Assembly: GCA_026770705.1 (NCBI GenBank)
Contig: JANJGN010000189.1
Span: 372,001-436,000 of the forward strand
Direction: 5' to 3'
Length of the DNA: 64,000 bases
From: Isurus oxyrinchus
Lineage: Eukaryota
A model generated the notes under the pieces. That model was not told the DNA's origin. It saw only the letters and a list, made by a program, of their open reading frames with translations, and ran no database searches. Position 1 is the stretch's first letter. Each line of letters begins with the position of its first letter. The position numbers and the translations under genes were made by a program. Of the stretch, positions 3,332-62,385 are shown piece by piece.

Positions 3332-3371
3332 CTTGGAGAAGTGACAGGAGGAAGTAAGATTTCCCGATCAT
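3332..3371 (-). CDS. Siglec-like signal-peptide exon with intact ATG (MIGKSYFLLSLLQ, phase 1); whole exon 3413-3332; no V exon follows within the window
   Basis: ctttcag acceptor, CAAG|gtaata donor, hydrophobic leader; homologous to 28458-28539. Confidence 0.8.
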
Positions 3372-3990: not shown

Positions 3991-4189
3991 TTGTGCTCTC
4001 AGCAAAACGTTTACCATCTGATGATCTGTCAGCTCATATATGGGCATCTATAGTCATGAAGCTTCTCCATTGGCTCCGTGGGATTAGACTCCTCCCCCTC
4101 ACCTCGGAGGCTGAAACTCAGGCGATAAGAGTTCCCAATACAGGTCTCTGGCCTTATGATTCATTTCAACGATCCCTGTTATCATTACG

Positions 4190-5200: not shown

Positions 5201-5914
5201 AGTTCTGATTGTGGTCCGCAATGTCCTAAGTGCATTCTAGGCACTGCCCAAGATTCCGCCTGATGTCTGTGTAACAACAACATCATGTACAAGTCAAGAA
5301 TAATTCTCACTGTGTCAGTGCAGCAAGACAGCTTTGGAATGGCACCACCACTGGCAGGAGTGTGCAACTACAATGTGACATGTTTACATTGGAAATTTCT
5401 ATTATAAAGATGGGCAATGGAATTCATATGATGGAGAAAATGTGACAACATGAAGTAATGTCTTTGAGCCAAGAATTTGGCTGCAAAATAAGAATCTTAA
5501 TCTATAAATATCTACAGAACAGGCTGAGCATTTTAATCACTTGAGTTAATCAATGTAATTTTATTCATAAGCCAAATGCTTCTTACAATCTATCGCAGCA
5601 TGAAAAAGGTGCAGCATTCAGAAAGCACATTCCAATCAGAGAACAGAGTTTAGCAACGGCACATTTCTGTTCATTCCTATTCGACCATGTTGGCTGCACA
5701 CAGCCAGACAATGCCGTGGTTATGATGTGTCCACACAGCAGGACTGGGGAGCACCAGGTATAAGGAAAGGTTTCAGCTTGCTGAGGAGAAGAAGGAGAAT
5801 CTCTCGTTCCAGGTTTCTCTCCGTACATTAAGAAGCAGGCATGCCGATGTTTCATTGCACTCTGTCTGCTGATGGGAGTCCGCTTGGAAATTGCTGTTTG
5901 TGCTGATGGAAAGA

Positions 5915-6530
5915 ATAAGCTTTTCATAAATCGAGGGACTGAGTACAAACACAGGGAGGTTATGCTGAACATTTATAAAGCTCTGGTTAGGTCACAACTA
6001 GAGTATTGTGTCCAGTTCTGGTCTCCTCACTTTGGGAAGGAAGTGAGGGTCCTTGAGAGGGTGGGGAGGAGATTGAGCAGAATGGGTCCAGGGATGAGGG
6101 ATTTTAGCTACAAGGTTGGGTTGGAGAAGCTGGGGTTGTTCTCCTTGGAGCAAAGGAGATTGAGGGGGGATCTGATCGAGGTGTACAAGATGATGATGGG
6201 TTTAGATAAGGCAGACAAAGAGAAGCTGTTGCCATTAGCTGATGGGACAAGGACTGGGGGACACAGATTGAAGGTTTTGGGCAGAGGGGGATGTGAGGAG
6301 GAACTTTTTTACACAGCGAGTGGTAATGAGCTGGAACTCGCTGCCTACGAGGATGGTGGAAGTGGAGACGATGAACAATTTCAAAAGGAAATTGGACGGA
6401 CACTTGGAACTAAACTCACAGGGATACGGGGATAGAGCGGGGGAATGGGACTGACTGGATTGCTCTACAGAGAGGCAGCATGGACTCAATGGGCTGAATG
6501 GGCTCCCACTGTGCTGGAATGCCTCTCTGA
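5915..6530 (+). mobile_element. CR1 LINE 3' end (mirror copy at ~36620-37240, minus)
   Basis: YKALVRSQLEYCVQFWSP and RRLRGDLIEVYK motifs; GGGCTGAATGG tail. Confidence 0.9.
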
Positions 6531-6637
6531 TACGAAGGTGATTCTAACCAGGACACTAACCAGTTTCATTACAACTTAACACAACATCACACATTATTTG
6601 TCCGCACTGACTAACCAGATTGTTGCTGTACAAAGCT

Positions 6638-6777
6638 TCAAACAGTCTGTCGACTTCCTTTCACTGTTTGTCTCTCCCAGACACAGACTCCAGCGATAGT
6701 GATAACCACAGCCACAAGGAATATCACAGCTCGTATTCCCAGGATCAGGATCACGTGCAGAATCTCTCCTCCACTGT
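6638..6777 (-). CDS. Transmembrane/terminal exon with intramembrane Arg: SGGEILHVILILGIRAVIFLVAVVITIAGVCVWERQTVKGSRQTV*
   Basis: ctctag acceptor, phase 1, hydrophobic span, TGA at 6640-6638; AATAAA at 5565-5560. Confidence 0.8.
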
Positions 6778-8451
6778 CTAGAGAACACACAGAAAGAAAT
6801 CATCACTGACTCTCCGCTTTCAATCTCTCACTCTGGCTGAACAATCAAGCTTCATATCACTGCAACATTTGCTGTAATATTGACCCATCCACTGGGATTC
6901 AATGTGGAATGAATGTTTTCATTGTAAACACTCTAAGAGTGGACAATCGGAACTTTCCCCTTAGCGTGGAACATTGGTGAGAATGGATCATTGTGCTGTT
7001 GGACTCCCTGTCCAATGTTTCTCTCCGTCGCTGTGTACAGGATTGTGCTGTAGAAAATTCTGGAAACGTTTAGTGCAGCGTGGAAATCCATCTCGGACGC
7101 GTGTGCGAATCGGGCAGGTTCGAGATGGACTCCCCCACGGACTTACACCCCCCGCTTAATAAACAGTTCCAATCTTTACCCAGAGAGAGGGGAGAATGTG
7201 GAACTCGCTCCCACTGTGAGTGATTGAGGTGAACAGTATCGATGTATTTAAGGGGCAGGAGGGTCGGTAACCAGAGGGACACAGATTGATGAACCGGAGG
7301 GGGAGATGAGGAGAATTTGTTTTGACAGAGCGAGTTGTTGTGATCTGGAAGGTGCTGCCTGAAAGGGCGGTGGAAGCAGATTCAATAGGAACTTTCAAAA
7401 GGGAAATTGGATAAACACTTGAAGGAGGAAGATGGGGGCAAAGTGGAGTGGTGGTTAGTGGATCTGATTGGATAGATCATTGAAAGACCTGGCACAGGCA
7501 CAATGGGCTGAATGGCCTCCTCCTGTGCTGTATCATTCTCTGCTTCCATTATCTCTCCCCCAGTCAGTAACCACTCCAGATCCCTCTTGAAGGTGACAGA
7601 GAATCAGCAACCACCACACCCACTGACAGCACATTACCGAGGATCCCTACTCTCTGGGAAAAGATGAAGTCCCCAACATCCAGCCTATTCCTGCTTCCCA
7701 GAGAGTGTAACCCTTCAGGGAGGCGCTGAGGAAGTTTTCAATAAAATGAGTTATCAAATCTACCATTTGAGAAATAATTTAATTCTGATGATCTCAATGC
7801 TTGTGGAGCAAACTGGGAAGTAGATTTGCTTGAAAAGCTGGGAAACACAAGGATTAAGTGCTACAATGCCACCACTGGTGGAAGGCTGTAACTACAGCGT
7901 GACGTTTACATAGGCAGTCATCATTATAAACAGGGGCATTGGACATATTGGGAATTATGTGCACGGAAATAGTGAGAACACGATGTAATCTTTTCACCAG
8001 CAAGAATTCTCGTACTAAACCTCTTCACCTCTGTTTTAATCTCAGATACACAAAAAAAATCACAGAATCAGATAAGGAGGAGTTGGGACTAGTTCTTCGT
8101 CAAAGGGTTAGGTTTCAGGTACCTCCTTAAAGGGAGAGAGAGAGAGTTGGAGAAGCAGATAGTATCTACGAGTGCCTCTATGCATCTGAGTGTTTGTACG
8201 AGTAATTTCCATATTCTTCCATAAATATGAATGGGAACACGAATCCCAGAATTCAGCCCACTCTCCAGTGCAGTACTGAGGGAGGTCAGGTAACCCATGA
8301 GGGAGTCTTGTGCCAGTGTGTTTGTTTGTGAGTGTGTCTTTGTGTGTGGTCATATATGTGTGTCTACACGTGTCTATTTAGGTCTGTATGTTTGAGGGTG
8401 TTTGTGTAGTGTTCGAATCTGTGAGAGATGTTGAAGTCTGTGTACACTCAC

Positions 8452-8600
8452 GTTCCACAGTGATGGTTATGAACCCCTCCACTGCTCCATGTTCATTCTC
8501 TGAACACATTGATAGTGTCCAGTGTCCCTGGATGTAACGTGAGGAATCACCAACCACAGCTCATTGTTGGAACTTGTTCTAATCATTGGGACGTTAAGAT
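8452..8600 (-). pseudogene. 3' half of a C2-set Ig exon; acceptor and 5' half replaced by ~185 bp of unrelated sequence
   Basis: Matches the 3' part of 34380-34661 with a 1-nt loss; intron homology resumes near 8790. Confidence 0.85.
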
Positions 8601-8926
8601 CTCAGGGCAGGAATCAAGAAGCCCGTTCGCACGATTACCAACAGAAAGTGAACAACAATTTATACTTAATGGGAAGAGAGTGCTGATTGGTTGGCAAGTG
8701 GTCTCTGATAGGTGGAGGTGTTGCCATGGAGAATACTGTGTGTGAGATGAAAAGTTTAGACAGCTTGTCTCTTCATTCAGCAATAATCATATAAAGATCA
8801 ATTAACTTCTATCGACTGTGAAGCACTTAGAGATTACTGAGAATGTGGATACTGAGAACGGGCTGCACTGTCAGAGGGTCAGCGCTGAGGGAGTGCTGAT
8901 GTAGAATGAAGAGTGTCCGTTCTTAC

Positions 8927-9223
8927 CTTGCACAGTTAGTACGAGGGTCCGCTCCGATGAAACAGATGGATATCTCACTCTGCAGCTGAGATTGTGTCCG
9001 TGGTGTTTGAGTGATGGGATCAGGGTCAGAACAGAAGTATAGGTCAGAGTGACACCATGCTGAGTTACAGTGTTTGAGACTGATCCAGGTACGTCAGTGG
9101 GAGTGTCCCAGGTTAAGACAGGTGCTGCTGTTCCATTGCACGTTGCGTTGAAGGTGCAGCTTACATCCACACGCTTTCCTGCAATAATTTCAGCAGGGAA
9201 TATCGTGGGTTTATCTGTGAAAT
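8927..9223 (-). CDS. Siglec-like domain-2 (C2-1) exon, open frame, 297 nt, phase 1-1
   Basis: DFTDKPTIFPAEIIAGKRVDVSCTFNATC...LSCRVRYP...VLTVQ; AG/GT boundaries. Confidence 0.9.
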
Positions 9224-9474
9224 CTAACAGACAGAGAATGGATCCTTTTAGAGAAATATAACGTGAAGCACCAGTTCAAATAGTTATCACAGTCCCACAA
9301 GAGAAAGCACTTTTACAAGGATGATATCAGAACTGAGAGGTTACAATGATCAGGAAAGATTTTCTTGCTCTTTGGCAGTAGTGTTTCTGTCTCTCAGCTT
9401 AATACACGTTCACTCCGAGACATGTGAATTGAGAACACTGGATGAGAGAAGAGGCTCAGACCAGAGATTGGAGT

Positions 9475-9610
9475 TAAAAGCAGAATACTGCGGATGCTGG
9501 AAATCTGTAACCAAAACAAAAATTGCTGGAAAGACTCAGCAGGTCTGACAGTATCAGTGGAGAGGAAGACAGGGTTAACGTTTCGAGTCCGTATGACTCT
9601 TCATCAGACC
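9475..9610 (-). mobile_element. Penelope terminal-repeat fragment with a minimal hammerhead-ribozyme motif
   Basis: Minus strand reads CTGATGA-A-GAGTC-ATACG-GACTC-GAAACGTT; homologous to 11876-11970. Confidence 0.7.
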
Positions 9611-10081
9611 AAAGGTTTGAGTTCACTGGCTTCTCATTTCCTCAGTGATCTGGGTGATTTATCACCTTGTGGTTTGTTGGATCTTGCTGTGCACAAACTG
9701 CCTGCTGTGTTTAACATCTGTGACTACAATTCAGGAATAATTTCATTGGCTGTGAAGGGATTTGGCTCCTCCTGAGGTGGTAAATTGCGCTGCAGAAATG
9801 CACATCTTTCTTTTATCGATACGTCAGACTTTTAAACAGGACAGGAGAGATTGATGGGTGTGGTAACCTGATAATACAGTTAATGCTTTTCATCATTGAT
9901 ATTAAAGTGAGTATTAGACGTTGCTTTAGGACTGAACTGGAAGCTATCATCAGGTTATTGAGAATCAGACAGTGTGTTATAATAAGCTGTGTTTTGTGTT
10001 AATATGTAAACGTCACAGTTTGTGTTATTTCCCATTGAGTGTTGAATGTGAATTGTTGAGTAATTATAACACAGCACTTAC

Positions 10082-10300
10082 CAGAAACGTGAAGCTGGGT
10101 TACAGGATAGTAGCTGTAACTATTACTGCTGTCAAATTCTATTCTGAAAAAAATAAGGTCCTGCATCTTCCCGTCTGATGTTGTTTATAATCAGGGAACA
10201 GTCGCCATCTTTCAGGTCTCCAGACAGCCGGGTACGATGGCGGAATCTTTGATCCCTGTGACTGTGACCCTCGGAGTGAAAGGCTATAGACCATTTAGGC
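10082..10300 (-). pseudogene. 3' half of a Siglec V-set exon fused directly to promoter sequence; +1 T in a homopolymer before the essential Arg
   Basis: IAFHS...RTRLSGDLKDGDCSLIINNIRREDAGPY; 7 T versus 6 T in the 29.7-kb copy. Confidence 0.9.
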
Positions 10301-28539: not shown

Positions 28540-29404
28540 GTAATATCATCGTCAGCTCAGACAGATTTATGGTTAATAGTCTTCGTAAAAGATCATTCTT
28601 ATTGAGCTGTGATTCGGAACCAATTCAGCAGTGACCCAGTGCACAAACTCACACCAACTCCCATTCACCCATCACCCCTGTGCTCCCTGATATACACTGA
28701 CTCCCTGTCTGACAGCAGAATTGGGGGAGTGCAGAGATCACAGAGGGTTGTAGGTTTGAGTAGGTTACAGAGACAGGGAGTGGAGCGGAGTGATGGAGGG
28801 ATTGGAAATCAAGTGTGAAAATAATCACATCGAGGTGTTGTTGGACTGGGAGCCAGTGTAGGTCAGCGAGTGACTTGTGGGGTCGGGGTGGGTGTGTGCG
28901 GAGGTGAAAGCTTGAGTGGAAAATTGGACACAAAATTCAGGGGATGAAGTCTATCTTGTGGCTAGCACTCTGACAGCAATGGCCTGAAATTAGTGTCTTT
29001 TGCTGATTTTAATCAGAATTTCCCATGAAGACAACACAGCAGCTCCTAGAATAGACAGGCTGTTCAGTGTCACACTTCCTGTCCATTCTCACCATGCTAG
29101 ATACTTCAATAAGGGAGCAAGATAACTGAAAGAGAGAAGGAAGGTAAAGCTGTCTGTATGTAAAGGTGTCAATATTCAGTTTGCATATTTGTCTTTGCTC
29201 TTGACACAGGCAGAGCTCAAGCTAGAGGCACTGTGTTAGTGTGTTTCACAGGGTCTGCTGGAGTAGGGTCAGTGCTGAGCTTGGGGACAAGTCAGTCTAC
29301 AATGCTGCATCGGAATCAACAATACAACAATATGGGGTTTGGATCAGAAATAATCCCTTAGACAATGAGGATCCAGGGTTAAATATTGATATTTCTCTCC
29401 ACAG

Positions 29405-29773
29405 TTGGACTGTCACAAGAGTGGAAAGGTGAAACTCCACGAGAGGTGACAGCGCAGGAAGGTTCGTGTGTACAGATTCCATGTCATTACAGTTATCCAT
29501 CGTGTCTGGAAAACCAACCGCGAGGTGGAGTCTGGTTTAATAATGAGGAACAGATTCCCTGGGCTCCCATTGCCTTTCACTCCAAGGATCACAGTCACGA
29601 GTTACCACGGTTCCACCATCGGACCCGGCTGTCTGGAGACCTGAAAGATGGCGACTGTTCCCTGATTATAAACAACATCAGACGGGAAGATGCAGGACCT
29701 TATTTTTTCAGAATAGAATTTGACAATGGTCCGAGCCATAACTATTACCCTGTAACCCAGCTTCACGTTTCTG
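29405..29773 (+). CDS. Siglec V-set exon (369 nt, phase 1-1) with essential Arg
   Basis: QEWK, GSCVQIPC, GDCSL and EDAGPYFFRIE: Siglec-type Cys pattern and F-strand Arg. Confidence 0.93.
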
Positions 29774-31088
29774 GTAAGTGCTGTGTTATAATTACTCAAC
29801 AATTCACATTCAACACTCAATGGGAAATAACACAAACTGTGACATTTACATATTAACACAAAACACAGCTTATTATAACAGACTGTCTGATTCTCAATAA
29901 CCTGGTGATAGCTTCCAGTTCAGTCCTTAAGCAACCTCTAATACTCACTTTAATATCAATGATTAAATGTATTGACTGTGTCCATCAATGTTATCAGGTT
30001 ATCCACTCCCATTAGTCTCCCTAATGCTTTTTAAAAGTCTAACAATTTGACAAAAGAAGGATGTGCATTCCTATTGCGCCTTACACCACCTCAGCAAACT
30101 TCAAATCACTTCACAGACAATGAAGAAATTCTTGAAGTATAGTCACTGTCTAACGTGGCAGTGAGTTTGTTCACAGGAAGCTCCCACAGAGAGCAATGGG
30201 ATCAGTGACCCAGATCTCTGAGAGAATGATGAGCCAGGGTTCCATGAGCTGTGGGCTGCTCCATCACCCACACCCCAGTGTTGGCAATTCAAGGGTCTGG
30301 GAGTGAAAGTGTATTCAGCTCAGTGACACATTCCCCACCAAGTTTGAAAATAGGAAAGTTGCTGCTGATTGTTGTTACCTCTCAGTTCCCATCTCATCCT
30401 TGGAAACCTGCTTTCAAAATACAAAAGCAAGTCTCGCATTTCCATAGCGCCTTTCACCACTTCAGGACGATAATAAATCAATTCACAGTCAATGAAGTGA
30501 TTCTTGAAGCACACATTCTCCCCACTCTCTGGGTAAAGAAGTTTCTCCTGAATTCCCCATTGGATTTATTAGTGAGGATGTTATATTGTCAGCCTCTGGT
30601 TTTGTTCATTGTGAGGAGTGGAAACACTCTCTCCATGTCTACTCGATCAAAACCTTTCATTACTTCAAAGGTCAAATGAGGTCACCCCTCAACCTTCTCT
30701 GTTCAAGAGAACAGAGACCCAGCCTGTTCATCCTCTCCTGATAGGTAAAGCCTCACATTGCTGAGATCATCCTTGTGAAGCTTTTTACCACCCTCTCCAG
30801 TGTCTCCATATCCTTTTCCAAATGCTGAGTCTGTTCTCCCCGAGCTGTGAGCTGTTCCTCCACCCTCACCCAGTCTGGTCAAATCAAGGGTCACTGAGTG
30901 AGAGTGTATTAATCTGAGTGACAGAGATTCAACAAGTGTAAAAATAGACAATTCTAAAATGATCATTGTAACCTCTCAGTTCTGATATCATCCTTGTAAA
31001 AGTGCTTTCTCTTGTGGGACTGTGATTTCTATTTGAACTGATGCTTCACGTTATATTTCTCTAAAAGGATCCATTCTCTGTCTGTTAG

Positions 31089-31385
31089 ATTTCACAGATA
31101 AACCCACGATATTCCCTGCTGAAATTATTGCAGGAAAGCGTGTGGATGTAAGCTGCACCTTCAACACAACGTGCAATGGAACAGCAGCACCTGTCTTAAC
31201 CTGGGACACTCCCACTGACGTACCTGGATCAGTCTCAAACACTGTAACTCAGCATGGTGTCACTCTGACCTATACTTCTGTTCTGACCCTGATCCCATCA
31301 CTCAAACACCACGGACACACTCTCAGCTGCAGAGTGAGATATCCATCTGTTTCATCGGAGCGGACCCTCGTACTGACTGTGCTAT
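31089..31385 (+). CDS. Siglec-like domain-2 (C2-1) exon
   Basis: 297 nt, phase 1-1; extra Cys consistent with the V-C2 interdomain disulfide. Confidence 0.92.
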
Positions 31386-31554
31386 GTAAGTACAAACACC
31401 CTTCAATCTACATTAGCTGGAATAGTATCAAATGTGCACAGCAAGCTCCCACATACTGCACTTTGTTTATAAACAAACCATTGGTATTTAACTGGTAAAA
31501 AGTGAGCCCTGACAGGCAGTACATCCTTACTACTGACTCTCCGATAGTGCATCA

Positions 31555-41380: not shown

Positions 41381-43727
41381 TGGATGTGACATCTGGAATG
41401 CGAAGCTAGTCTCAGTAATGGTGACCATGAAACTAAGGCCAATTGTTGCAAAAACCCATCTGGGTCACTAATGCCCTTTGGGGAAGGAAACCTGCCGTCC
41501 TTACCCATTCTGGCCTACGTGTGACTCCTGACCCACAGCAATGTGGTTGACTCTTAACTGGCCCCTGAAATGGCCGAGCAAGCTACTGAGTTATATCAAA
41601 ACCCGCCACAGACCAGTCAAACCAGGTGAACTGCAGCACTTCGAAAAGACAGCTCAGCACCCCCTTCTCCAGGGCTCAGTCTGGAACAGGTAACAAACGC
41701 TGTCCACATCCCGTGAAAGAATTTTGGTAAAAAGGTAGCCGTGTATCACCACCCACGGCCAGCGCCAACCCCCCCACCCCTACCTGATTGCACCAGTTTC
41801 AGATTACACCAGGTCAATGAACGGATAGAAACTCAAACCAATGAGATGAGCACAGAGCAGGATCAAGCCAGAGAGAGTTGGTGGGAAGAATTGGGAAAGC
41901 AACAAAAAAGGCAGAGCGGACACTAACACTATAACAAAGTAAAGACCAGAGGAGGAAGGAAGCAAGTGCGAAGAGGAATTGAGAGTAGAGCTGGTAGGCT
42001 GCTTGTCGAAGCCAAGGACCCTCCATAGGTCACACCCACAGTGCTTTTGGGGAGGGAGTTACATGATTTTGACCCAGGATCATCAAGTTTTGCACTGGCA
42101 GAGCCTTTAAAGAAAAGGGACCTTCACTACCCGTGTCCCCCGCCCAACAAAGCTGTTGACATGCCGAGTCCACCTGTACAGGCAACCTCCAGACAGTTGA
42201 CTACAAAGGCCATTGCAGCTGCTGAATATGACTTCCAGTTTCAAAACCTTCATGAATACAAGGATGGGGGATTCAGCAGGAATATTCCTGCACATCCTGT
42301 GGCAGATCCTGTAAATAAAAGGGACCTTCACTCACTCCTCAAAGCTGCTGACCTGCTGATTTACATCTACAGGCAACCTCCAAACAGTCGACTAGAGAAG
42401 ACAATGCAGCTGCTGAATGTGACTCCTAGTTTCAAACCCTTCACTCTGGAAAGAAGGAATCCAGAGCAATGGGCCTCACTATGATACTTGACAGAAACTG
42501 ATTTTAACTCTCATCTCTAAGTATTATTTTTCCTTTGCTTACATTTTAATCCTTGCACCTGATGGCTTTATCGCTTCAACTTAAATAACTTTCAGCAGGA
42601 GCCAGGTTCAAATTGAATGGACAAGCTGGCTTGGGAGGCCAAAAGGCCTACTCCTGCTTCTGTTTATTTATGTTTGTGTTGTTATGTAGTGGAACTAGAG
42701 AGGTTATAGCAGTTATGAGAACATTAAGCAAACAGCAGCAAGAATTGAACACCTACGTTGTGGTTTATGAAAAGGTTTTCAACTTGGTCAACTGGTAAAA
42801 TCTGTTGAAAGTGGGCTATCATGGCGTGTGGCCTTTGTGTGATATTTGTAACAACGTTCTCGATGTCGGAACAGTTTGCATTGAACAAAGCTGATCTTTA
42901 CCCAGAACTTCAGAGGAAGTTCCCTGGTGTGGGGGGCATGGTGGGGGGGGAGGGTGAGGGAGAGACAAGTAGCCTGAAATACCAAGCCAGACACTTTGTG
43001 AAGACAAAAGTTGTTTATTCATTTTTTTTTTACAAAGCACAATCTTTACAATTAAAGTCCCGACAAGATGATGGTGAATCATGAACACATTGTCGGGGTG
43101 AATCTGTGCCCGGGAGCATAAAGCAGCAAAATCAGGAGCCCGCTTTACATCTCTCTGAATTTTAACTATCATTAACCCCAGTAACATCCATTCAAATGAC
43201 TTAGTCATAAGATTCCTCACACATTCACTTGCACACTCACACACCCACACCCACACAGACACACTGACACACTCACTCATTCACATTGACACACACATAT
43301 TGACAGTCACACACACCCACACAGACACACTGACACACTCACTCATTCACATTGACACACACATATTGACAGTCACACACACACACACACACACACGCTC
43401 ATAAAGACAGACACAAACACAGTCACGTGAGGTGAATAGTGTCGATGTATTTAAGGGGAAGCTGGATAAACACACGAGGGAGAAATGAATAGAAGGATCT
43501 GGTGATGGGGTGAGATGGAGAAGGGGTGGGCGGAGACTCGTGTGGAGCAGAAACACCAGCATGGAACAGATGGGCCAAATGGCTTCTTTCCCTGCTGTAA
43601 AACGCAGGTAAAGTTTCAGTTGGAATTAATGAACAGGGCCTGTGTGAAATAGATTGCTAAGCAGTAGATAAGGAGGGGAGAGGCTGTGGCATGGTGCAGG
43701 ATGACCTTGCGTGAATGAGGCCAGGGT

Positions 43728-43844
43728 CTAATATCTACAGCAGATACCACAAGTCTCATTTGGTTCTCTCCAATTACAGCAGTGACAGCAGAATCTGCAG
43801 AGCTGCTGTCTGCTCATTCTGTTCTGGCGCTGCAGCAAGGAGCC
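43728..43844 (-). CDS. HAMP: Hepcidin-like exon 3: GSLLQRQNR|MSRQQLCRFCCHCCNWREPNETCGICCRY*
   Basis: cttttccag acceptor, phase 0, RxxR site, C-xx-CC-x-CC-xn-CG-x-CC-xx-stop pattern. Confidence 0.93.
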   Translation of the reverse strand, partial: GSLLQRQNRMSRQQLCRFCCHCCNWREPNETCGICCRY

Positions 43845-43949
43845 CTGGAAAAGCAGGAGCACAATAGGTGAGAACATTCCGGAAAGAAAGAAGGCACCGC
43901 CTCCCTTTGACTCTGGCATCATTTCAATCAGGCGCGTCATTGGAAGGAG

Positions 43950-44790
43950 GATGGCGCATTTCTCTAGCACCTTTCCCCACCTCAGGATGGCCCAAAATGT
44001 TCAACAGCTGATGGAAGGACTTTTTCTGAAGTGAGCTCACCGCTGTAATGTAGGAAACGCAGCAGGCAATTCACGCACAGCAAGATCCCACAAACAGAAA
44101 TGTGATAATGGCCCCATTTTCAGTTTTTTACCAATGTCAGTTGAGGGATAAATGTTTGCCCCAGGAAAGTGGACATAACTCCACCCCATCCAGCCCCCAC
44201 CACCCCCTCCACACATACCCCCCAACTCCTGACGCACTTCATCTAAATTGTGGCCATGGAATCCTCTATATCCACCTGAGAGGGCAGATTGGTTGCCCCA
44301 GTTTAATGTCTCATCTGAAAGACAGCGCCTTCAACAGTGCAGCACCCCCTCAGTACTGACCCTCCGACTGTGCAGCACTCCCTCAGTACTGACTCTGACA
44401 ATGCAGCACATCCTCAGTACTGACCCTCCAACAGTGCAGCACTCCCTCAAGACTGACCCTCTGACAATGCAACACTCCCTCAGTACTGACCCTCCGACTG
44501 TGCAACACTCCCTCAAAACTGACCCTCTGACAATGCAGCACTCCCTCAGTACTGACCCTCCGACTGTGCATCCCCCCGCCGGTACTGACCCTTGGACAGT
44601 GCAACACTCCCTCAAGACTGACCCTCTGACAATGCAGCACTCCCTCAGTACTGACCCTCTGACAATGCAGCACACCCTCAATACTGACCCTCCGATAGCT
44701 CGGTAATTCCTCAATTACACCTGGTGGTCCTTTTAACTCAGAGCTGAGAGTCGCAGAGAATCGAGCAGACACCCTGAACTGACACTTGCA
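43950..44790 (-). mobile_element. Deu-domain (SacSINE1/AmnSINE-like) SINE with internal 33-bp expansion (44335-44700)
   Basis: CACAGCAAGATCCCACA and GTTTAATGTCTCATCTGAAAGAC motifs run into the satellite. Confidence 0.75.
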
Positions 44791-46232
44791 GTGCAAGTAC
44801 TGGGAGTGCGCTGGTCATTATCATGCTGCTGTCTGTGGGATCTTACTGTGCGCCAATGGCTGATTCTTTTCCCACAGTACATCAGTGACCTCACAGGAAA
44901 GAAAAAAAGCACTTGCTTGTCTGCGAAACACTTTGGGACGTCCTGAAGTGTTGGAAGGCGCTAGAGAAATGCAAGTCCTCTTTGTCTTTCACTCAATCCT
45001 CTAAGGTGTCTGTTGATTAACCAGCCTCTCGGTGTATGATGTAGGCCTGGTTATAAACAGGTAGAAGGATCAAATATCAAAAATGCTTTGGCTGACAGTC
45101 AAACCGATTGTGCATTCGGAGAGATTAGATATGGTCTGCGCACAATGACTCCAGTCTCAGGCACTGACTGCCACCTGGGGTCTCCCTTCCACATAACACT
45201 CACAACTTGCATTTACACAGCGCCTCTGACATTGCAAAATGTCCCAGCCCACATTACCGGAGCGTAAATCAGAGAGAAGTCTAACACTGAGTCACATATG
45301 GAGATATTAGGGTTAGGTGACCAAAAGCTTGGTCAAAGATGTCAGTTTTTAAGGAACGTCTTAAAGGAGAGAGAGAGAGAGAGAGGCAGAGAGGTTAAGG
45401 GAGGGTATTCCGGAGCTCAGGGCCCCAGGCAGCTGAAGGCACGGCCGCCAATGGTGGAGCGATGGGAATCAGGGGGACCCGGGAGATGCAGTAATTTCAG
45501 AGATTTTGGAGGAACATCGGGACCGGAGGAGGTGTTCTCCTGCTCCATATCTCTCTCTCTCTTCCTCTCATCCACTCCTCCTCTCCCTGTCTCTCTCTCT
45601 CCTACTCTTCCTCTCAATTGCCCTCTCTCCCAATCTTTCTCTCCTCTCTCCCTTTTCCTGTCTCTCTCCCTCTCTCTCCCCTGTCTCATTCTCCCACTCT
45701 GTATCTCTCCCTCTCTCTCACACTATTTTTGTACCTTGCGCTCACTCTGTAACTCTCCCTTCCCTGTTAATTTCTCTCTCTTGGACAATCTCTCTTCCCT
45801 TTTCACTTTCCCTCACTCTGCATCTCTTTAATTTCTCCCTCTGTCACTCTCTCCCACCTATGTTCTTTCCCTTTCACCCCTCCCCGTCCCACTCTCTGTC
45901 TCTCTCTTCCAATCCCTCCCTCCCCCATTCCATCCCTCTCTCCGACTCTCGACTCCCAGCCTCTCTTTAACCCACTCCCAGGCTGGATCAGTCTCCCTCT
46001 CACTATTCCCGGCGTGGGTTACATTTAAAATTCCTGTGGGGATATGTTCACTTCCTTGGAATTGCCTCTTCCCAGCTTTGCAAAAAAAAGGGGGGGGGGG
46101 GCTCCATTTCAAACATGCCTCCTGAGTATAACCGAGACAGACTGCCACTGAAATCAGCTTGAAATCAGAAAACTTTCTGTGGAAGAAACGAGCAGGGAGA
46201 AACCTTAAAATAAGGAATGAATTTCCACCTAC

Positions 46233-46289
46233 CGTGTCCGGGGAATCCACAGATTTCTCAATCGTCGAAGAACCTAAAGCAGTGTCAAC
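46233..46289 (-). CDS. HAMP: Hepcidin-like exon 2 (propeptide VDTALGSSTIEKSVDSPDT)
   Basis: tttctttttgcag acceptor, gtaggt donor, 57 nt, phase 0-0, acidic. Confidence 0.8.
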
Positions 46290-46389
46290 CTGCAAAAAGA
46301 AAGAATTTATCAGGGAGAAAGTGAGAGGAGGATTGAGGGAGAGGGAGAGAGAGAGAGAGAGGTACAGGAGAGAGAGGGGGAGGAGGACA

Positions 46390-47200
46390 GACTTGCATTT
46401 CTCTAACGCCTTTCACCACATCCCAAAGCATTTCACAGCCACTGAAGGATGTTTTTGAAGTGCACTCACACTGTAGGAAATGTGGCAGCTGATTTGTGCA
46501 CAGCAAGATCCCACAAATAGCAATGTGATCATGGCCTAGATCATCTGTTTTTGGTGATGTTGGGTGAGGGATAAATATTGGTGCCAGGACACCGGGGAGA
46601 ACTCCCCCTGCTCTTCCTCCAAATAGTGGCTGTGGGATCTTTCACACCCGCCCGAGAGGGCAGACGGGGGACTCAGTTTAATGTCTCATTCAACATTGTT
46701 GTGCTCCCTCAGTACTAACCCTTTGACACTGCAGCACTCCCTTAGTATTAACCCTTCGATAGTGCTGCGCTCCCTCAGTACTGTCCCTCCGTCAGTGCAG
46801 CTCTATTTCAGTACTAACCCTTCGACACAGCAGCACTCGCTCAGTACTGACCTCCGACAGTATAGCACTCCCTCAGTACTGTCCCTCCAATAGTGCAACA
46901 CTTCCACTCTACTGACCCTGTAACAATGCAGCACTTCCTCAGTACTGACCCTCCGTCAGTGCAGCGCTCCCTCAGTACTGACCCTCCGACAGTGCAACAC
47001 TTCCACAGTACTGACCCTGTAACAATGCAGCACTTCCTCAGTACTGACCTCCGACAGTATAGCACTCACTCAGTACTGTCCCTCCAATAGTGCAACACTT
47101 CCACACTACTGACCCTCTGACAGTGCAGCACTCCCTCAGCACGGAGTGTTGACCGACGTTATGGGACTGAATTCCCTGGAGTGAGACTCAGACCAGAGAT
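46390..47200 (-). mobile_element. Near full-length Deu-domain SINE with internal 33-bp expansion (46700-47140)
   Basis: Tail GACTTGCATTT, body GGACACCGGGGAGAACTCCCC, head remnant after the array. Confidence 0.8.
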
Positions 47201-47214
47201 TTAGGTAGGGTTGT

Positions 47215-48650
47215 TCCGGCTGGAGGAGGTTACAGAGATAGGGAGGGTTGTAGAGGCTGTAGGAGATAACAGAGATAGGGAGGGTTCTAGACGCTGCAGG
47301 AGGTTACAGAGATAGGGAGGGTTGTAGGGGCTGTAGGAGGTTACAGAGATAGGGAGGTGAGTAGGGGCTGTAGGAGGTTAAAGAGATGGGGGGGTTGTGG
47401 GGGCTGGAGGAGGTTACAGAGGTAGGGAGGGTTGTAGAGGCTGGAGGAGGTTACCAAAATAGATACTGTTGTAGGGGCCACAGTAGGTTACAGAGATAGG
47501 GAGAGTTATAGTGTGGAGAGGACGTTATAGAGTTCATGAGCATTGTAGGGGCTGGAGGAGGTTACAGTGATTCTGAGGGTCGTGGGGCCTGGAGGAGATT
47601 ACAGAGATAGGGAGGGTTGTAGGGTCTGGAGGAGGTTACAGAGATAGGGAGGGTTGTAGGGTCTGGAGCAGGTTACAGAGATAGGGAGGGTTGTAGGGTC
47701 TAGAGGAGGTTACAGTGATCATGAGGGTTGTGGGGCCTGGGGGAGGTTACAGAGATAGGTAGGGTTGTAGGTGCTGGAGGAGGTTACAGAGATAGGGAGG
47801 GTTGTAGGATCTGGAGGAGGTTACAGTGATCGTGAGGGTTGTGGGGCCTGGGGGAGGTTACAGAGATAGGGAGTGTTGTGGGGACTGTAGGAGGTTACAT
47901 AGATAGGGAGGGTTGTCGGGTCTGGAGGAGGTTACAGAGATAGGGAGGGTTATAGGGACTGGAGGAGGTTACAGAGATAGGGAGGGTTGTAGAGACTGTA
48001 GGATGTTACAGAGATAGGGATTGTTGTAGGGGCTGGAGGATGTTACAGAGATAGGGAGGGTTGTAGGGGCTGGAGGAGGTTACAGAGATAGGGAGGGTTG
48101 TAGGGGCTGGAGGAGGTTACAGAGATAGGGAGGGTTGTACGGGCTGGAGGAGGTTACAGAGATAGTGAGGGTTGTAGGGGCTGGAGGAAGTTACAGAGAT
48201 AGGGAGGGTTGTAGGGGCTGGAGGAGGTTACAGAGATAGGGAGGGGTGTAGGGGCTGGAGGAGGTTACAGAGATAGGGAGGGTTGTAAGGCCTGGTGGAG
48301 GTTACAGAGATAGGGAGGGTTGTAGGGGCTGGAGGAGTTTACAGAGATAGGGAGGGGTGTAGGGGCTGGAGGAGGTTACAGAGATAGGGAGGGTTGTAGG
48401 GCCTGGTGGAGGTTACAGAGATAGCGAGGGTTGTAGGGGCTGGAGGAGTTTACAGAGATAGGGAGGGTTGTACGGGCTGGAGGAGGTTACAGAGATAGGG
48501 AGGGTTGTAGGGGCTGGAGGAGGTTACAGAGATAGGGAGGGTTGTACGGGCTGGAGGAGGTTACAGAGATAGGGAGGGTTGTAGGGGCTGGAGGCGGTTA
48601 CAGAGATAGGGAGGGTTGTAAGGCCTGGTGGAGGTTACAGAGATAGGGAG
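47215..48650 (+). repeat. 37-bp G-rich minisatellite (GGAGGAGGTTACAGAGATAGGGAGGGTTGTAGGGGCT), about 38 units, in hepcidin intron 1
   Basis: Tandem units. Confidence 0.95.
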
Positions 48651-48851
48651 TGGCTGAGGAGGGATTGAAAACAAGAATGAGAATTTCAGGGGAAACGACA
48701 GAAGGAAATGATGTTAAATTCATAGAGGGCGACAATATTAAAGGCACGAACATAATAATATCAAACTGCGGAAAAGACCAGTCTATCTGGATGGTAGACG
48801 TAGAGTCATGTGCAAGAAACACCTCACCCAGAGGGACATCTCTTAGCTTAC

Positions 48852-48944
48852 CCTCGACAAGGAGAAGAAGTGACTCAGCTGCAGGGAGAGCAGCAAAGTC
48901 AGAGTGAACAAGACAAGTCGCCATTTCATCTGGGAGCTTCCCAT
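48852..48944 (-). CDS. HAMP: Hepcidin-like exon 1 (signal peptide MGSSQMKWRLVLFTLTLLLSLQLSHFFSLSR; alternative ATG at 48929)
   Basis: Hydrophobic leader, AGG|gtaagc phase-0 donor, TATA-like box upstream. Confidence 0.85.
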
Positions 48945-49009
48945 CTCTGCCTGTCTCTTCTGATCTTCTGGCTCTGCTTTGATGCTTTGGTTTGTAACTA
49001 GAGGAGCTT

Positions 49010-49230
49010 CCTGCTCTTATACCTGAAACACTTGAAGGGGACAGCCGCGGGTGGGTAGCTGTGTGGTATCACACCCATTTCTGGATATTGCAGTGTCGAT
49101 GTTCCCTGTCCCACTGGCCTGGGACCAGCAGTAAGGTCACTGGGACATTGACTGTCTGGCGCCGAGAACTATCAGTCCCTCCGCAACGCCCTTCACCTTG
49201 TGCAAATATGTGTTCATATTGATGCAACAC
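49010..49230 (-). promoter_or_regulatory. Hepcidin-like promoter
   Basis: TATAAG 49021-49016; GGCGCC 49158-49163 with adjacent AGAC; C/EBP-like TTGTGCAA 49198-49205 and TGATGCAA 49220-49227. Confidence 0.65.
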
Positions 49231-51309: not shown

Positions 51310-53060
51310 ATATCTGTAACCTCCTCTCTCTCTCCCTTTCCTCCAGCCCCTACAACCCTCCCTTAGGCAGCCTCCACCTGCCTCTACAATCCTCCCCATC
51401 TCTGTAACCACCTTCAACCCCTACACCCCTCCCTATATCTGTAACCACCTCCAACCCCCACAACCCTCCCCATCTCTGTAACCACCTTCAACCCCTACAC
51501 CCCTCCCTATACCTGTAACCTCCTCCAGCCCCTGTAACCCTCCCTATCTCTGTAACCTCCTCCAGCCCCTACATCCCTCCCTATCTCTGTAACCTCCTCC
51601 AACCCCTACAACCCTCCCTATCTCTGTAACCTCCTCCAACCCCTACAACCCTCACTATCTCTGTAACCTCCTCCAGCCCCTACAACCCTCACTATCTCTG
51701 TAACCTCCTCCAACCCCTACAACCATCCCTATCTCATTAACCTCCTCCAACCCCTACAACCCTCACTATCTCTGTAACCTCCTCCAACCCCTACAACCCT
51801 CACTATCTCTGTAACCTCCTCCAACCCCTACAACCATCCCTATCTCATTAACCTCCTCCAACCCCTACAACCATCCCTATCTCATTAACCTCCTCCAACC
51901 CCTACAACCCTCCCTATCTCTGTAACCTCCTCCAACCCCTACAACCCTCCCTATCTCTGTAACCTCCTCCAGCCCCTACAACAATCCCTATCTCTGTAAC
52001 CTCCTCCAGCCCCTACAACCCTCCCTATCTCTGTAACCTCCTCCAGCCCCTACAACAATCCCTATCTCTGTAACATCCTACAGTCTCTACAACCCTCCCT
52101 ATCTCTGTAACCTCCTCCAGTCCCTATAACCCTCCCTATCTCTGTAACCTCCTCCAGCCCCTACAACAATCCCTATCTCTGTAACCTCCTCCATCCTCTA
52201 CAGTCCTCCCCATCTCTGTAACCTCCTCCAACCCTTCCTATATATGTAACCTCCTCCACAAGCCCATACAATCCTCTCTATCTCTGTAACAACCTCCAGC
52301 CCCACAACACCCTTATACCTGTAACCTCCTAGCCACTGTAACACTCCCTTATCTCTCAAGCCTCCACCAGCCTTGACAATGCTCCCCATCTCTGTAACTT
52401 CCTCCAACCCCCAGTACCCGCCCTATTTCTGTAATCTGTTCCAGTCCCTACAACCCTCCCTATCTCTACAACCTGCTCCACCCCCTGCAACTCGCCCTAT
52501 CTCTGTGTCATCCTCCAGCCCCTAACAACCCTCCCTATTTCTGTAACCTCCTCCAGCCCCTACAACCCTCCCTATCTCTGTGTCCTCCTCCAGCCCCTAC
52601 AACCTTCCCTATCTCTGTAACCTCCTCCAGCCCCTACAACCTTCCCTATCTCTGTAACCTCCTCCAGCCCCTACAACCCTCCCTATCTCTGTAACCTCCT
52701 CCAGTCCCTACAATCCTCCCCATCTCTGTAACCACCTTCAACCCCTACACCCCTCCCTATATCTGTAACCACCTCCAACCCCCACAACCCTTCCCATCTC
52801 TGTAACCACCTTCAACCCCTACACCCCTCCCTATCTCTGTAACCTCCTCCAACCCCTACAACCCTCCCTATCTCTGTAACCTCCTCCAACCCCTACAACC
52901 CTCACTATCTCTGTAACCTCCTCCAACCCCTACAACCCTCACTATCTCTGTAACCTCCTCCAACCCCTACAACCCTCACTATCTCTGTAACCACCTTCAA
53001 CCCCTACACCCCTCCCTATACCTGTAACCTCCTCCAGCCCGTACAACCCTCCCTATCTCT
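51310..53060 (-). repeat. 37-bp minisatellite in inverted orientation, about 47 units
   Basis: Reverse complement of the 47.2-48.6 kb unit. Confidence 0.95.
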
Positions 53061-54065: not shown

Positions 54066-55131
54066 TCCTCCAGTGAAACATTTCAGAGCAGCTGAGCTTG
54101 GTTTTCTGGAACCAGTCTCGGCCCAGAAGACTAGGGCCCTCACCTGTCGCTATGATCACTGGAAGCTGGGCTGTCTGCTGCCTGTAGGACACAGGTACTG
54201 GGATGAGGTCCTTTCCCTGTATGGATTCTCCAGTGTGTGTCTTCAGCTGATCCATTGTTGGCTCTAAATTCAGCGTCTGGGTTCCTTCATTTAGCTGTTT
54301 AAATGTGGGCTCTTCCACCACTGTGTCTGAGGCTCCCGTATCTGCCCCATTACTAGTGGCTGCCCATTCACTTGGGTTGTGATGGTTATAGGTTCAGTTT
54401 TTACCACTGTGACATTGGACAGGGAATAGACATCGGTATCAGCAGCTTCAGGCTCTGTGATATTATTCACTTCCATCATGTTGGTGCACTGCCTGATGGG
54501 CTGTCTCTATTTCACCCTGCATTGCTTTATTACCCGCCCCTTTCTTGTGGCAGTGATGGCATTCTGCCCCCTTGAACCTGCAGGTGTCCAGTACGTGCTC
54601 AATGCCCCCCACATCGAGAACAGGCCAACTTCGGAGTTGCTGCTGAAATACTCCCACGAAGCCTTTTAGTTTCTGGAGCGGCAGAGACTGTCTCTCGCTT
54701 GGCGGCTGTCTCTCTCTCTCTCTCTCTCTCCAGTTTGAGCCTCACGCCCGGTGGTTGTTTCCTGTCCCAGCTGAGGACTGGCGCCATGTTGTACATCCTG
54801 TAAATCCCGCCAGTCTCTCCCAGCACTTTCCATGCCTGGCGCTATTTCCATAGTGCGCTTCAAATCGATGTCGGCTTCTGCGAGTAAACGGCTCTGAATG
54901 GCGTTGGGGTGAACGACACAAACCAATCGGCCCCGCAACATGTCATTGAGTGTGTCTCCGAGGTCCCAGTGCTCAGTCACCTGCTTCCACTTCACTGTAT
55001 AGGTTGCGATGGACTCTCCCTGGGCCCTTACTCTGGAGTTAAACTTAAACCTCTGCATTATTACCCACGGCTTCAGCTGAAAACACATCTTCATGAGGTC
55101 GACTAATTGGTGAAAAGATTTAGAATTGGGT
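54066..55131 (-). mobile_element. Gypsy gag/zinc-knuckle/protease remnant
   Basis: NDMLRGRLVC, CHHCHKKG, PSLLGRDWF; related to 25.8-27.1 kb. Confidence 0.85.
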
Positions 55132-55421
55132 GTAATACACGTCACTGTCTTCAGCTCTGAGACTGTCAATCCTCACTGAACAATTCTTCCCTTCCAAGTC
55201 GCCGATTATTTTAGCACGTCCCACGAATGTGGCCATCCCATAATTGGGATCTTTGGTGTATGTGATGGTATATTTCCATCTATACCAATATTTATACCAA
55301 GCTCCGTGCAGTGCTGTGTAAGAGTGGGAAGGAAAGTCAAAGCTACACGGAATAACCACACAAGAGCTGCTGATGGCCCTCTGAGGCAGCGCCTTCATAG
55401 ACCATCCCTCTGACGTCACTC
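55132..55421 (-). pseudogene. Divergent MAG/sialoadhesin-like V-set exon truncated after EDSDVYY
   Basis: SCVVIPCSFDFP, HGAWY, GRAKIIGDLEGKNCSV; ctttcag acceptor, phase 1. Confidence 0.85.
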
Positions 55422-55529
55422 CTGAAAGGCAACAAGGGAGGGGACAGGACATCAAAAAGCAGAATATTACTTCAATGGAGAGAGGCAGCAGAATGCGGTA
55501 CAGAGGGATCTGGGTGTCCTTGTACATGA

Positions 55530-58200: not shown

Positions 58201-58409
58201 AGACCTGCCATATTTCAGATGATGTTTGAAATTAGCAACAGGCCTCATGTATAATTATATATCATCAACTCAAAATAAATAGATTATTCCTGTACATTTC
58301 ACTTTACTGTAAATTGTTTGCAGTTTCATCTCCTTAGAAGCCAGGCTTGTGTGATCACTATTTTTAAATAACGTTAATAATAAAGATGCGACAATCCACA
58401 TGCACACAT

Positions 58410-58445
<36 letters not shown>

Positions 58446-59148
58446 ATGTGTAGGCACATACATGCACATTTACACACAGTCATACACGTGCAAAAACCTA
58501 CACAGAAACATACACACACTCAACTCACACACACACACTCACACGTGCACACACATACACATACACATGTACACACATTCACTTATGCACAGAAATATAC
58601 ACAAAGACACACGCACATTTGCGCAAACACATACACACATGCACACACAGACACATGCATGCATACTCACACAAACATACTCACATATGTAGAAACACAA
58701 ACACATACACATAAACACGCGTGAGGTCCCTCTTCTCTCTCAGGGCTGCACTGGAGTCTCGGTGTCAGCTCCGATTCTGTGTTGAAGGAAGGTAAACTCC
58801 AGATCAACAAGACCCTGAACTGGATGAGCAACCTCCTGAACAGAGAATTGTAGATTTACCCCTCAGTGCTCCATCGATCAAATACAATTCATTCCCGTAA
58901 ATCCCTTGGCAAAATCCTGAGGATGTGAAAGTTTCTTTCATTCTAGGTGGACAGCACCTCTACTGGTGGGAGAATGTAACTCCAGTTTGACTGTTTACAT
59001 AGGCAGTGCCCATTATAAATTTGACAGTGGAAGTTATATGGAGGGAAGGTATCTGGAAATGCATACAGACATCAGATACAGAGAGATGATGCATGGAGTC
59101 TTGCTGTGCACGCTGCTTGCTCACATTAAACACTTGATTTGTTCTTAG

Positions 59149-59430
59149 ATGCTCCACAGAATCTCACATTTACTTCTCTTGAAATGATTAATGCTTCATC
59201 GATCAATATAATTGAGGGGAATTCTGCAGTGATAATCTGCTCTGTCGAGAGCTTCCCAGCTTCTAACCTGACGTGGCGACATCTTAATGTCCCAATGAAC
59301 AGAACAAGTTGCAACAATGAGCTGTGGTTGGTGATTCCTCACGTTACATCCAGGGACACTGGAGACTATCAGTGTGTGGCAGAGAATGAACATGGAGCAG
59401 TGGAGGGATACATCACCATCACTGTGGAAC
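59149..59430 (+). CDS. C2-set Ig exon, tandem copy 1
   Basis: 282 nt, open frame, phase 1-1. Confidence 0.92.
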
Positions 59431-59653
59431 GTGAGTGTACACAGACTTCAACATCTCTCACACACACATTCACACATGCAAAAAAACTCATGTGTAGACA
59501 CAAACATGCACGCTTACACACAAACATACGTTCAAACACATACACAGAAACACACACAAACTCAACTCACACATACAAACATTCATGCGCACACAAAGAC
59601 ACACACATGCACACACACTCCCACAAGCACAGACATACAGACATACACACACA

Positions 59654-59688
<35 letters not shown>

Positions 59689-60190
59689 GTCCACACATGT
59701 GCTGACAGACACGCGCATACACACAAATACAAACTCACGTGCAGAAGTACACACACAAGTGTGAGCTCCCTCTCCTCTCTCAGTTCTGCACTGGAGTCTC
59801 GGTGTCAGCTCCCATTCTGTGCTGAAGGAAGGTAAACTCCAGATCAGCAAGACCCTGAATTGGATGAGCAACCTCCTGAACAGAGAAATGTAGATTTAGC
59901 CCTCAGTGCTCCATCGATCAAATACAATCCATTGCCTATCAAGCCCTTGGGGACATCTTGAGAGTGTTAAAGGATGTTTCTTTCATTCTAGAGGGTTAGC
60001 AACTCTACTGGTGGGAGGAAGCAACTGCAGTGTGACAGTTTACATAGGAAGTGTCCATTATAAATATGACAGTAATTTTTCATGAGGGAAGGTACCTGGA
60101 AAAGCATTCCAACATCAGATACAGAGAGATGATGCATGGAGTCTTGCTGTGCACTATGCTTGCTCACATTAAAATCTTTATTTCTTTTAG

Positions 60191-60471
60191 ACGCACCCAG
60201 AATCTCTCAATTAATTCTCTTGATATGATTAACGTTTCATCGATCAATATAATTGAGGGGAATTCTGCAGTGATAATCTGCTCTGTCGAGAGCTTCCCTG
60301 CTTCTAACCTGACGTGGCGACATCTTAATGTCCCAATGAACAGAACAAGTTCCAACAATGAGCTGTGGTTGGTGTTTCCTCACGTTACATCCAGGGACAC
60401 TGGAGACTATCAGTGTGTGGCAGAGAATGAACATGGAGCAGTGGAGGGATTCATCACCATCACTGTGGAAC
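60191..60471 (+). pseudogene. C2-set Ig exon, tandem copy 2, with a 1-nt deletion (281 nt)
   Basis: ACGCACCCAGAAT versus the (AC)GCACCACAGAAT consensus of the other copies; spliced frame stops after 12 codons. Confidence 0.8.
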
Positions 60472-60529
60472 GTGAGTTACTGCAAACTCCAACATCACTC
60501 ACACACGCACACACACACACACACACACA

Positions 60530-60569
<40 letters not shown>

Positions 60570-61286
60570 TACACAGACACACACACACACTGACAGAAAC
60601 CTGTAGGCACACACATGCATAATTATCCACACACAGTCATACACATACAAGCACATACACAGGAAAATACACACCCATCTCAAACACACACACACATTCA
60701 TGCCCACACATAGACACACATATGCACAAACTCTCACTCATGGACAGACCTAGACACACAGACACATGCGCATGCGCACACACAGACACATGTGTGCATA
60801 CACACACAAACACACTCACATGTGCAGAAACACAAACACACAGATACACACACGTGAGTTCCCTCTCCTCTCTCAGTGCCGCACTGGAGTCTTGGTATCA
60901 GCTCCGATTCTGTGTTGAAGGAAGGTAAACTCCAGATCAACAAGACCCTGAATTGGATGAGCAACCTCCTGAACAGAGAATTGTAGATTTACCCCTCAGA
61001 GCTCCATCGATCAAATACAATTCATTGCCTGTCCAGCCCTTTGCGAAATCCTGAGGATGTGAAAGCAAGCTTCTTTCATTCTAGATGGACAACACCTCTA
61101 CTGGTGGGAGAATGCAACTGCAGTGTGACAGTTTACATAGGCAGTGTCCATTAAAAATGTGGCATAAGACGTTATCCTGAGGGAAGTTACCTGGAAATGC
61201 ATTCAGACATCAGATACAGAGAGATGATGCATGGTGTCTTGCTGTGCAATAGGTTTGCTCACATTAAACACTTGATTTGTTTTTAG

Positions 61287-61568
61287 ATGCACCACAGGAT
61301 CTCTCATTTACTTCGCTTAATATGATTTACGCTTCATCAATCAATATAATTGAGGGGAATTCTACAATGATAATCTGCTCTGTCGAGAGCTTCCCAGCTT
61401 CTACCCTGACGTGGCGACATCTTAATGTCCCAATGAACAGAACAAGTTCCAACAATGAGCTGTGGTTGGTGATTCCTCACGTTACATCCAGGGACACTGG
61501 AGACTATCAGTGTGTGGCAGAGAATGAACATGGAGCAGTGGAGGGGTTCGTAACCATCACTGTGGAAC
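61287..61568 (+). CDS. C2-set Ig exon, tandem copy 3
   Basis: 282 nt, open frame, phase 1-1. Confidence 0.92.
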
Positions 61569-62385
61569 GTGAGTGTGGAGATACATTTGTTTGTTTGTTG
61601 TCTCCGTGGTCTCCGTGGAGCCATTGGGATCGTGTTGTTTTTAATCCAGTTTTCTTCAATCCTCGCTCAGTCCACGTTATCCACACACCCAATTTTTCCT
61701 CTCCCTTTCTGTTTTTGCTCTCAGTTTCTCCTTCAATGGTTGTGAGGACAAGGCTGTCAGGTCTTCGTTTCCAATCTCCATACTTGACGACCTTTCGCTC
61801 TCTAACTGTCCTGAACAACCCTTTTAATTGCTGAACTTCTCATTCTTTAATTGATAAATATTATATATAAATGTTACATGGATTACTTTGAAATGCAACA
61901 CCTGTATTCATAAATTGCTTAGAAATTACTAAACATTCAACAGCCAATGAAGCATTATCGAAGTGAGCTCACTGTTGTAATGTAGGAAACACAGGTACTG
62001 ATTTGTGCACAGCAAGATCCCGCAAACCACCGTGTGATAATGACCTGATAGTCGATTATTTCAGTGAGGTTGGTTGTTACATGTGTAGAGACTACATACC
62101 CTTTAGGGAGGGAAGCATGTCTCGATGGGGATGTGACTCCAGTCTCAGACACCAACATGGTTAACTCTTACCTGCCCTCTGAACTGGTCTCCCAGTTTGG
62201 GACAAACCAGTGGTTCAGGAGGAAGACCCCCCACCACCTTCTCAAGGGGAAACTAGGGATGGACAATAAATGTCAGCATTGCCCGAGAATGAGTATTTAA
62301 ACATTGAGTGAGTGTATCGCTTCTCGAGATACATCGGAGCATCATTGTAAACCTGTAGTGCAGTAATTAATGGCTGTTTTTACAG

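Follow-up and report, generated by a model that had tools for sequence, protein, structure and literature searches.

A 64,000-nucleotide stretch of the genome of the shark Isurus oxyrinchus (assembly GCA_026770705.1, contig JANJGN010000189.1, positions 372,001 to 436,000 of the forward strand; hereafter the window, in whose own coordinates all positions are given) contains on its minus strand, at 43728-48944, a three-exon gene that is a genuine and intact member of the hepcidin family. The gene is spliced and highly expressed, since contigs from public sequencing runs join its exons at exactly the predicted sites and cover exons far more deeply than introns. Judged from its sequence, it appears to be a new member of the family whose mature peptide is unusual. 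Among vertebrates hepcidin acts as the master iron hormone, and its origin coincides with that of the jawed vertebrates. The locus described here provides an expressed shark hepcidin together with a HAMP-Siglec neighbourhood in a cartilaginous fish.

Translation exon by exon reproduced exactly the minus-strand model of a first-pass annotation (coding parts of 93, 57 and 117 nucleotides (nt) with phase-0 joins) and gave 31, 19 and 38 amino acids (aa) plus a stop, that is, a precursor of 88 aa in which each part of the proposed layout of signal peptide, acidic propeptide, RxxR site and eight cysteines could be located. The coding part of exon 1 (48852-48944; 93 nt) encodes a predicted 31-aa signal peptide, recognizable by hydropathy from an n-region with lysine or arginine, a hydrophobic core of 12 residues and a c-region that is polar. 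Exon 2 (46233-46289; 57 nt) encodes a 19-aa acidic pro-piece with four acidic residues and one basic residue, and the coding part of exon 3 (43728-43844; 117 nt, 38 aa and stop) carries the end of the pro-region and the mature eight-cysteine peptide, with predicted cleavage at RQNR or RMSR, which overlap as two RxxR convertase motifs and are followed by QQLCRFCCHCCNWREPNETCGICCRY. Both introns (intron 1, 46290-48851; intron 2, 43845-46232) have GT..AG ends; the donors read AGG/GTAAGC and ACG/GTAGGT, and both acceptors are pyrimidine-rich and end in CAG/G.

Family membership could be established from the exon 3 product alone, which matched the Pfam Hepcidin profile PF06446 with 31.3 bits (gathering cut-off 27; E 2.6e-7) over profile positions 24-52 of 53; the lack of such a match would, on the terms of the first-pass annotation, have refuted it. 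Across all six reading frames the window holds the cysteine pattern C-x2-CC-x-CC-x8-C-x2-CC a single time, and none of 200 local shuffles produced it. Among sequences of solved structures the top match was bass hepcidin 1S6W, with an E-value (0.41) that is weak, yet with an alignment that runs across all cysteine blocks and opens a four-residue insertion in the loop. Searches of the 64-kb window with the three exons (tblastn and blastn) found no second copy of any of them, and another hepcidin copy within the window is thereby ruled out. An AlphaFold2 single-sequence model of the exon 3 product was helical (mean predicted local distance difference test score 69.7, predicted template modelling score 0.38) and is untrustworthy for a disulfide-rich mini-protein modelled without an alignment.

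Transcription was assessed in runs X1 to X5. Runs X1-X4, which derive from one sample of organism A, hold 61 to 78% of the words sampled from exon 3 and its 3' untranslated region (3'UTR), and low-depth runs of organism B also carry part of this sequence. Contigs, as distinct from raw reads, of X1-X3 and X5 were aligned to 43400-49100 at a likeness threshold of 90%. Those of X1-X3 skip 43845-46232 and 46290-48851 exactly, at depths of up to 26,304 and 25,037, respectively, through the joints 43843>46232 (cut +1) and 46287>48850 (cut +2), both with CT..AC ends on the plus strand. Both joints flanking exon 2 were therefore seen in run contigs, and the junctions singled out in advance for inspection, 48852-46289 and 46233-43844, proved exact, with GT..AG ends and very high depth. 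Summed depth in X1 ranged from ~2e4 to 4e5 in exon bins and from ~30 to 1800 in most intron bins, exon bins exceeding most intron bins 100 to 1000 times. Exact GT-AG joints combined with such a contrast are hard to explain other than by RNA. The gene has three exons, spliced as predicted, with the mature peptide in the last of them.

The same contigs include unique intron pieces with 0 differences from the window, at 46278-46514 (237 letters) and 48630-48773 (144 letters), which look like pre-mRNA of the window locus or of an identical copy. Because these pieces carry no differences, organism A can be identified as the window's species, and the pieces probably come from the window locus itself. 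Run X5 contains a genomic piece that spans exon 3, extends into intron 2 and departs from the window at 13 of 225 letters; it is therefore assigned to a related species. A minor joint leads from the exon 2 donor (46232) to a cryptic intron 2 acceptor near 45046 (GT..AG; depth 98 and 844); this 46232/45045 joint looks like a rare alternative splice. The first-pass annotation had called the gene functional, and of that claim the intact open reading frame (ORF), correct splicing and strong transcription stand, whereas secretion, processing and activity are predicted.

The predicted mature peptide (43731-43817) reads MSRQQLCRFCCHCC and would comprise 29 aa after cleavage at RQNR, or 26 aa (from 43808) after cleavage at RMSR, and would have an isoelectric point of 8.2 or 7.7 and a net charge of +1.5 or +0.8 for the longer and shorter form, respectively. 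Its eight cysteines are spaced C-x2-CC-x-CC-loop-C-x2-CC, and the Cys5-Cys6 loop, NWREPNET, which holds an N-E-T sequon, is longer at eight residues than that of the described members compared (four residues in man, five in sea bass). The type-1 N-terminal motif x-(S/T)-H-(F/L)-(P/S)-(I/L)-C, which ferroportin binding requires, is absent, the window gene having M-S-R-Q-Q-L-C in its place. With human and other vertebrate HAMP (LEAP-1) the gene shares the distribution of signal, pro-region, convertase site and mature peptide across three exons, the eight-cysteine pattern, the RxxR site, neighbouring Siglec genes of apparent MAG/CD22 type and a very high transcript level; the human precursor has 84 aa and three exons, and the HAMP-like architecture claimed earlier was borne out in exon order and cysteine pattern alike. 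The window gene differs from vertebrate HAMP in an N-terminus without His and Phe/Leu, in the N-E-T sequon of its loop and in a net charge of about +1.

The peptide closely resembles a teleost type. According to a study of sea bass, Hamp1 begins QSHLSLC..., Hamp2 reads ...CRFCCNCCPNMSGCGVCCRF, and only Hamp1 regulates ferroportin (PMC5665920). Teleost Hamp2, exemplified by sea bass (HSSPGGCRFCCNCCPNMSGCGVCCRF, PMC5665920) and by hybrid bass hepcidin (1S6W), has in common with the window peptide CRFCC, CC, P-N-x-(S/T) and CG(I/V)CCR(Y/F), as well as a non-canonical N-terminus and the coexistence of a canonical type-1 peptide; multiple gene copies are reported for Hamp2. Compared with Hamp2, the window peptide CRFCCHCC...PNETCGICCRY has four extra loop residues (NWRE).

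The same contigs give evidence of a canonical-type partner. One contig of X2 matches the window as far as 43812, where the Ser codon of RMSR ends, and then continues in frame with H-L-S-I-C-M-Y-C-C-G after ...RQNRMS; a contig of X3 departs at the same position, 43812, and returns to the window sequence at 43731, immediately ahead of the stop. Because of this departure and return, the canonical-type sister transcript can be said to share pro-region and 3'UTR with the window gene: in the same shark, both have the same pro-region to ...RQNRMS, the same stop and the same 3'UTR, whereas the mature part starts HLSICMYCCG in one and RQQLCRFCCH in the other. The locus of the canonical-type transcript lies outside the window. 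A cut after RQNR in the sister transcript would give M-S-H-L-S-I-C, and by analogy the window peptide would be the 29-mer that starts M-S-R-Q-Q-L-C. Since a second transcript with a canonical N-terminus is present in the same contigs, the window gene appears, on comparison of the sequences, to be a diverged paralogue that resembles teleost Hamp2 and stands beside a canonical-type transcript.

How such a gene might act can be outlined from these features. A TATA-box promoter would drive a three-exon mRNA encoding the 88-aa prepropeptide; the signal peptide of exon 1 would send the product into the secretory pathway, where cleavage by a furin-type convertase, at RQNR or RMSR, would release a peptide of 26 to 29 aa, predicted to fold into a four-disulfide hairpin with an enlarged eight-residue loop and a diverged N-terminus. 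We think it somewhat more likely than not that the window copy is a type-2-like hepcidin serving mainly in host defence, through antimicrobial or immunomodulatory effects, while the canonical copy would be the ferroportin-regulating iron hormone. We favour this host-defence role because the canonical motif is absent here, is present in a co-expressed paralogue, and the peptide resembles Hamp2; of the features of type 2, the non-canonical N-terminus and the coexisting type-1 transcript are present, while antimicrobial activity and a lack of effect on ferroportin are putative.

Several points weigh against this assignment. The hydrophobic residue before the first cysteine and the Phe of C-x-F-CC are kept, so that the peptide may bind ferroportin, and a net charge of only about +1 is low for a membrane-active peptide. 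The canonical paralogue is known from a single joint and a loose end of 35 letters. The runs are taken as RNA by inference, their sole control being the exon/intron contrast inside the stretch, and at the 90% threshold part of the exon depth stems from paralogues or alleles.

The foremost competing explanation is that the window gene encodes the iron hormone in the classical sense, alone or redundantly with others, that its peptide would bind ferroportin and control the export of iron, and that its odd N-terminus and loop are tolerated shark-specific variation. It is of the same family as liver hepcidin, with the same locus and structure and a similarly very high expression; its promoter contains a sequence resembling a bone morphogenetic protein (BMP)-responsive element (GGCGCC plus CAGAC); C-R-F-CC keeps an aromatic residue equivalent to human Phe9; and the ferroportin of cartilaginous fish has Cys326 (PMC8235187). 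With a net charge this low (+0.8 to +1.5) and its retained C-x-F-CC, the peptide may still be an iron hormone. Yet M-S-R-Q-Q-L-C has other residues where the canonical x-(S/T)-H-(F/L)-x-(I/L)-C has His and Leu/Phe, the same sample contains a transcript that does carry the canonical motif, and sea bass Hamp2, which the window peptide resembles, does not regulate ferroportin (PMC5665920). We therefore regard an iron-hormone role as unlikely, though by no means negligible.

It is a good deal less probable that the window copy is silent or non-functional, with the spliced contigs originating from near-identical paralogues and the intact ORF reflecting a recent duplication. In run X2 alone as many as 9 to 11 different contigs do span each of the joints, and variant joints occur, with DM/GS in place of DT/GS (a C-to-T change at a CpG) and R/G in place of R/V. 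Nevertheless, joints bearing the window's exact letters reach depths of 2,475 to 26,304, none of the best-supported differences falls within the three coding exons, the intron pieces mentioned above are identical to the window over 237 and 144 letters, and there is no damage to the TATA box, the splice sites or the ORF. That the gene is a chance assembly of ORFs or an artefact, as tiny exons between satellites might suggest, is in effect refuted by exactly spliced contigs at extreme depth, by the Pfam match (E 2.6e-7) and by the unique cysteine pattern (0/200 shuffles).

The gene is apparently an unannotated hepcidin copy, which fits two blank protein searches. In a collection of 5.8 billion proteins that includes the RefSeq proteins of several sharks, none with a length of 22 to 140 aa was found to have three 5-residue words in common with the product of exon 3. 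A phmmer search of the exon 3 product against 1.84 billion representatives returned only two long cysteine-rich proteins, the 38-aa query being too short for this to be informative, and in the ESM Atlas the best score (0.76) belonged to an unrelated plant cluster. Genome annotation, it seems, can miss three tiny exons among satellites even for a gene whose transcripts rank with the most abundant in a tissue. We found no description of chondrichthyan hepcidin genes in the literature searched; the nearest report is the plasma proteome of the nurse shark, which lists hepcidin and notes that the whale-shark annotation is without an orthologue (PMC9207270). The word hepcidin does not occur in the supplement of that paper. 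The nurse shark belongs to a different shark order from the window species, and its entry indicates that the peptide circulates in a shark. The ferroportin cysteine that binds hepcidin, Cys326, is present in cartilaginous fish, where it first appears (PMC8235187). Given hepcidin in nurse-shark plasma and this ferroportin cysteine, the existence of a hepcidin in sharks comes as no surprise and was to be expected.

The origin of Hamp2 is attributed to a duplication in acanthopterygians. Since the two shark types share their nucleotide flanks at the 90% threshold, they would rather reflect a separate and more recent split, or gene conversion, within sharks. We would go further only tentatively, and at rather less than even confidence, in proposing that a type-2-like lineage of hepcidins, present in multiple copies, arose independently in sharks within the ancestral HAMP/Siglec locus, co-amplified with Siglecs and converging with teleost Hamp2, in which the loop was doubled and possibly N-glycosylated and which is highly expressed alongside the iron hormone. 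If so, the split of hepcidin between iron and defence would have arisen at least twice in jawed vertebrates. With two peptide types indicated in one shark, the timing of this separation of roles becomes directly testable.

Upstream of the coding region, a TATAAG box (49016-49021, minus strand) lies 77 nt before the ATG, and transcription would be expected to start near 48990; the high depth of run contigs in the bin 48939-49100 is consistent with a short 5' untranslated region. A candidate BMP-responsive element with a SMAD box, GGCGCC followed directly by CAGAC (49154-49163, minus strand), lies 219 nt before the ATG, GGCGCC occurring only twice in the 64-kb window. Post hoc, this arrangement hints at BMP/SMAD control like that of mammalian HAMP. 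Downstream of the stop, the 3'UTR (43430-43727, minus strand) is covered at high depth and its end is uncertain: AATAAA is missing, the nearest equivalent being a weak AATACA at 43451, beyond which a GT-rich microsatellite follows, and loose contig ends at 43429 continue into unrelated sequence instead of poly(A). Because of these loose ends, and because short pieces match elsewhere in the window, part of the 3'UTR stretch may be repeat-derived.

The gene had been placed within a Siglec-like cluster, and exons of Siglec/CD22 type, identified by Pfam and database matches, do flank it on both sides. One of them is a Siglec-type V-set exon at 29386-29853 on the plus strand, a CD22-type first immunoglobulin (Ig) domain (V-set 45.3 bits; Ig_CD22 35.9 bits, cut-off 27), whose best matches are 'CD33-like' of Carcharodon carcharias at 94% identity and other shark Siglecs at 65-80%. 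Another V-set exon (55123-55527, minus strand), just upstream of the hepcidin gene, scores 24.6 bits, below the Pfam V-set cut-off of 26; its start, ...IPCSFDFP..., in our reading recalls the first domains of MAG and other Siglecs. In mammals the gene order is USF2-HAMP-MAG-CD22. Conserved synteny of HAMP with MAG/CD22 would lead one to expect a hepcidin inside a Siglec cluster, and the mammalian HAMP region has been described as containing USF2, MAG and FFAR genes (PMC4453067). USF2 was not seen in the 64-kb window. The gene would thus sit in an ancestral HAMP/Siglec neighbourhood, the shark Siglecs being candidate orthologues of MAG/CD22.

Much of the remaining sequence is repetitive. Intron 1 consists mostly of 33-bp and 37-bp satellite arrays (46704-47139 and 47202-48650, respectively). 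The 37-bp satellite, which at 47202-48650 takes up most of the intron, returns in inverted orientation at 51339-53060, ~2.4 kb upstream of the gene, the two arrays being 82-89% alike; because of this inverted recurrence, exon 1 and the promoter are bracketed by inverted arrays. Arrays of the 33-bp repeat (consensus ACAGTGCAGCACTCCCTCAGTACTGACCCTCCG) are found all over the window, for example at 44334-44695 and 46704-47139, and create long spurious ORFs on both strands.

On a larger scale, an inverted duplication (2715-10287 versus 38320-27910; 83-89% identity) includes exons of Siglec type along with fragments of retroelements, and within it the C2-set exons at 8871-9170 (minus strand) and 31142-31498 (plus strand) encode near-identical proteins. 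At 58397-61834, among TG/CA-rich microsatellites, a unit of ~1.05 kb is triplicated in tandem, each copy with an Ig_3/I-set exon (59139, 60051 and 61277, plus strand).

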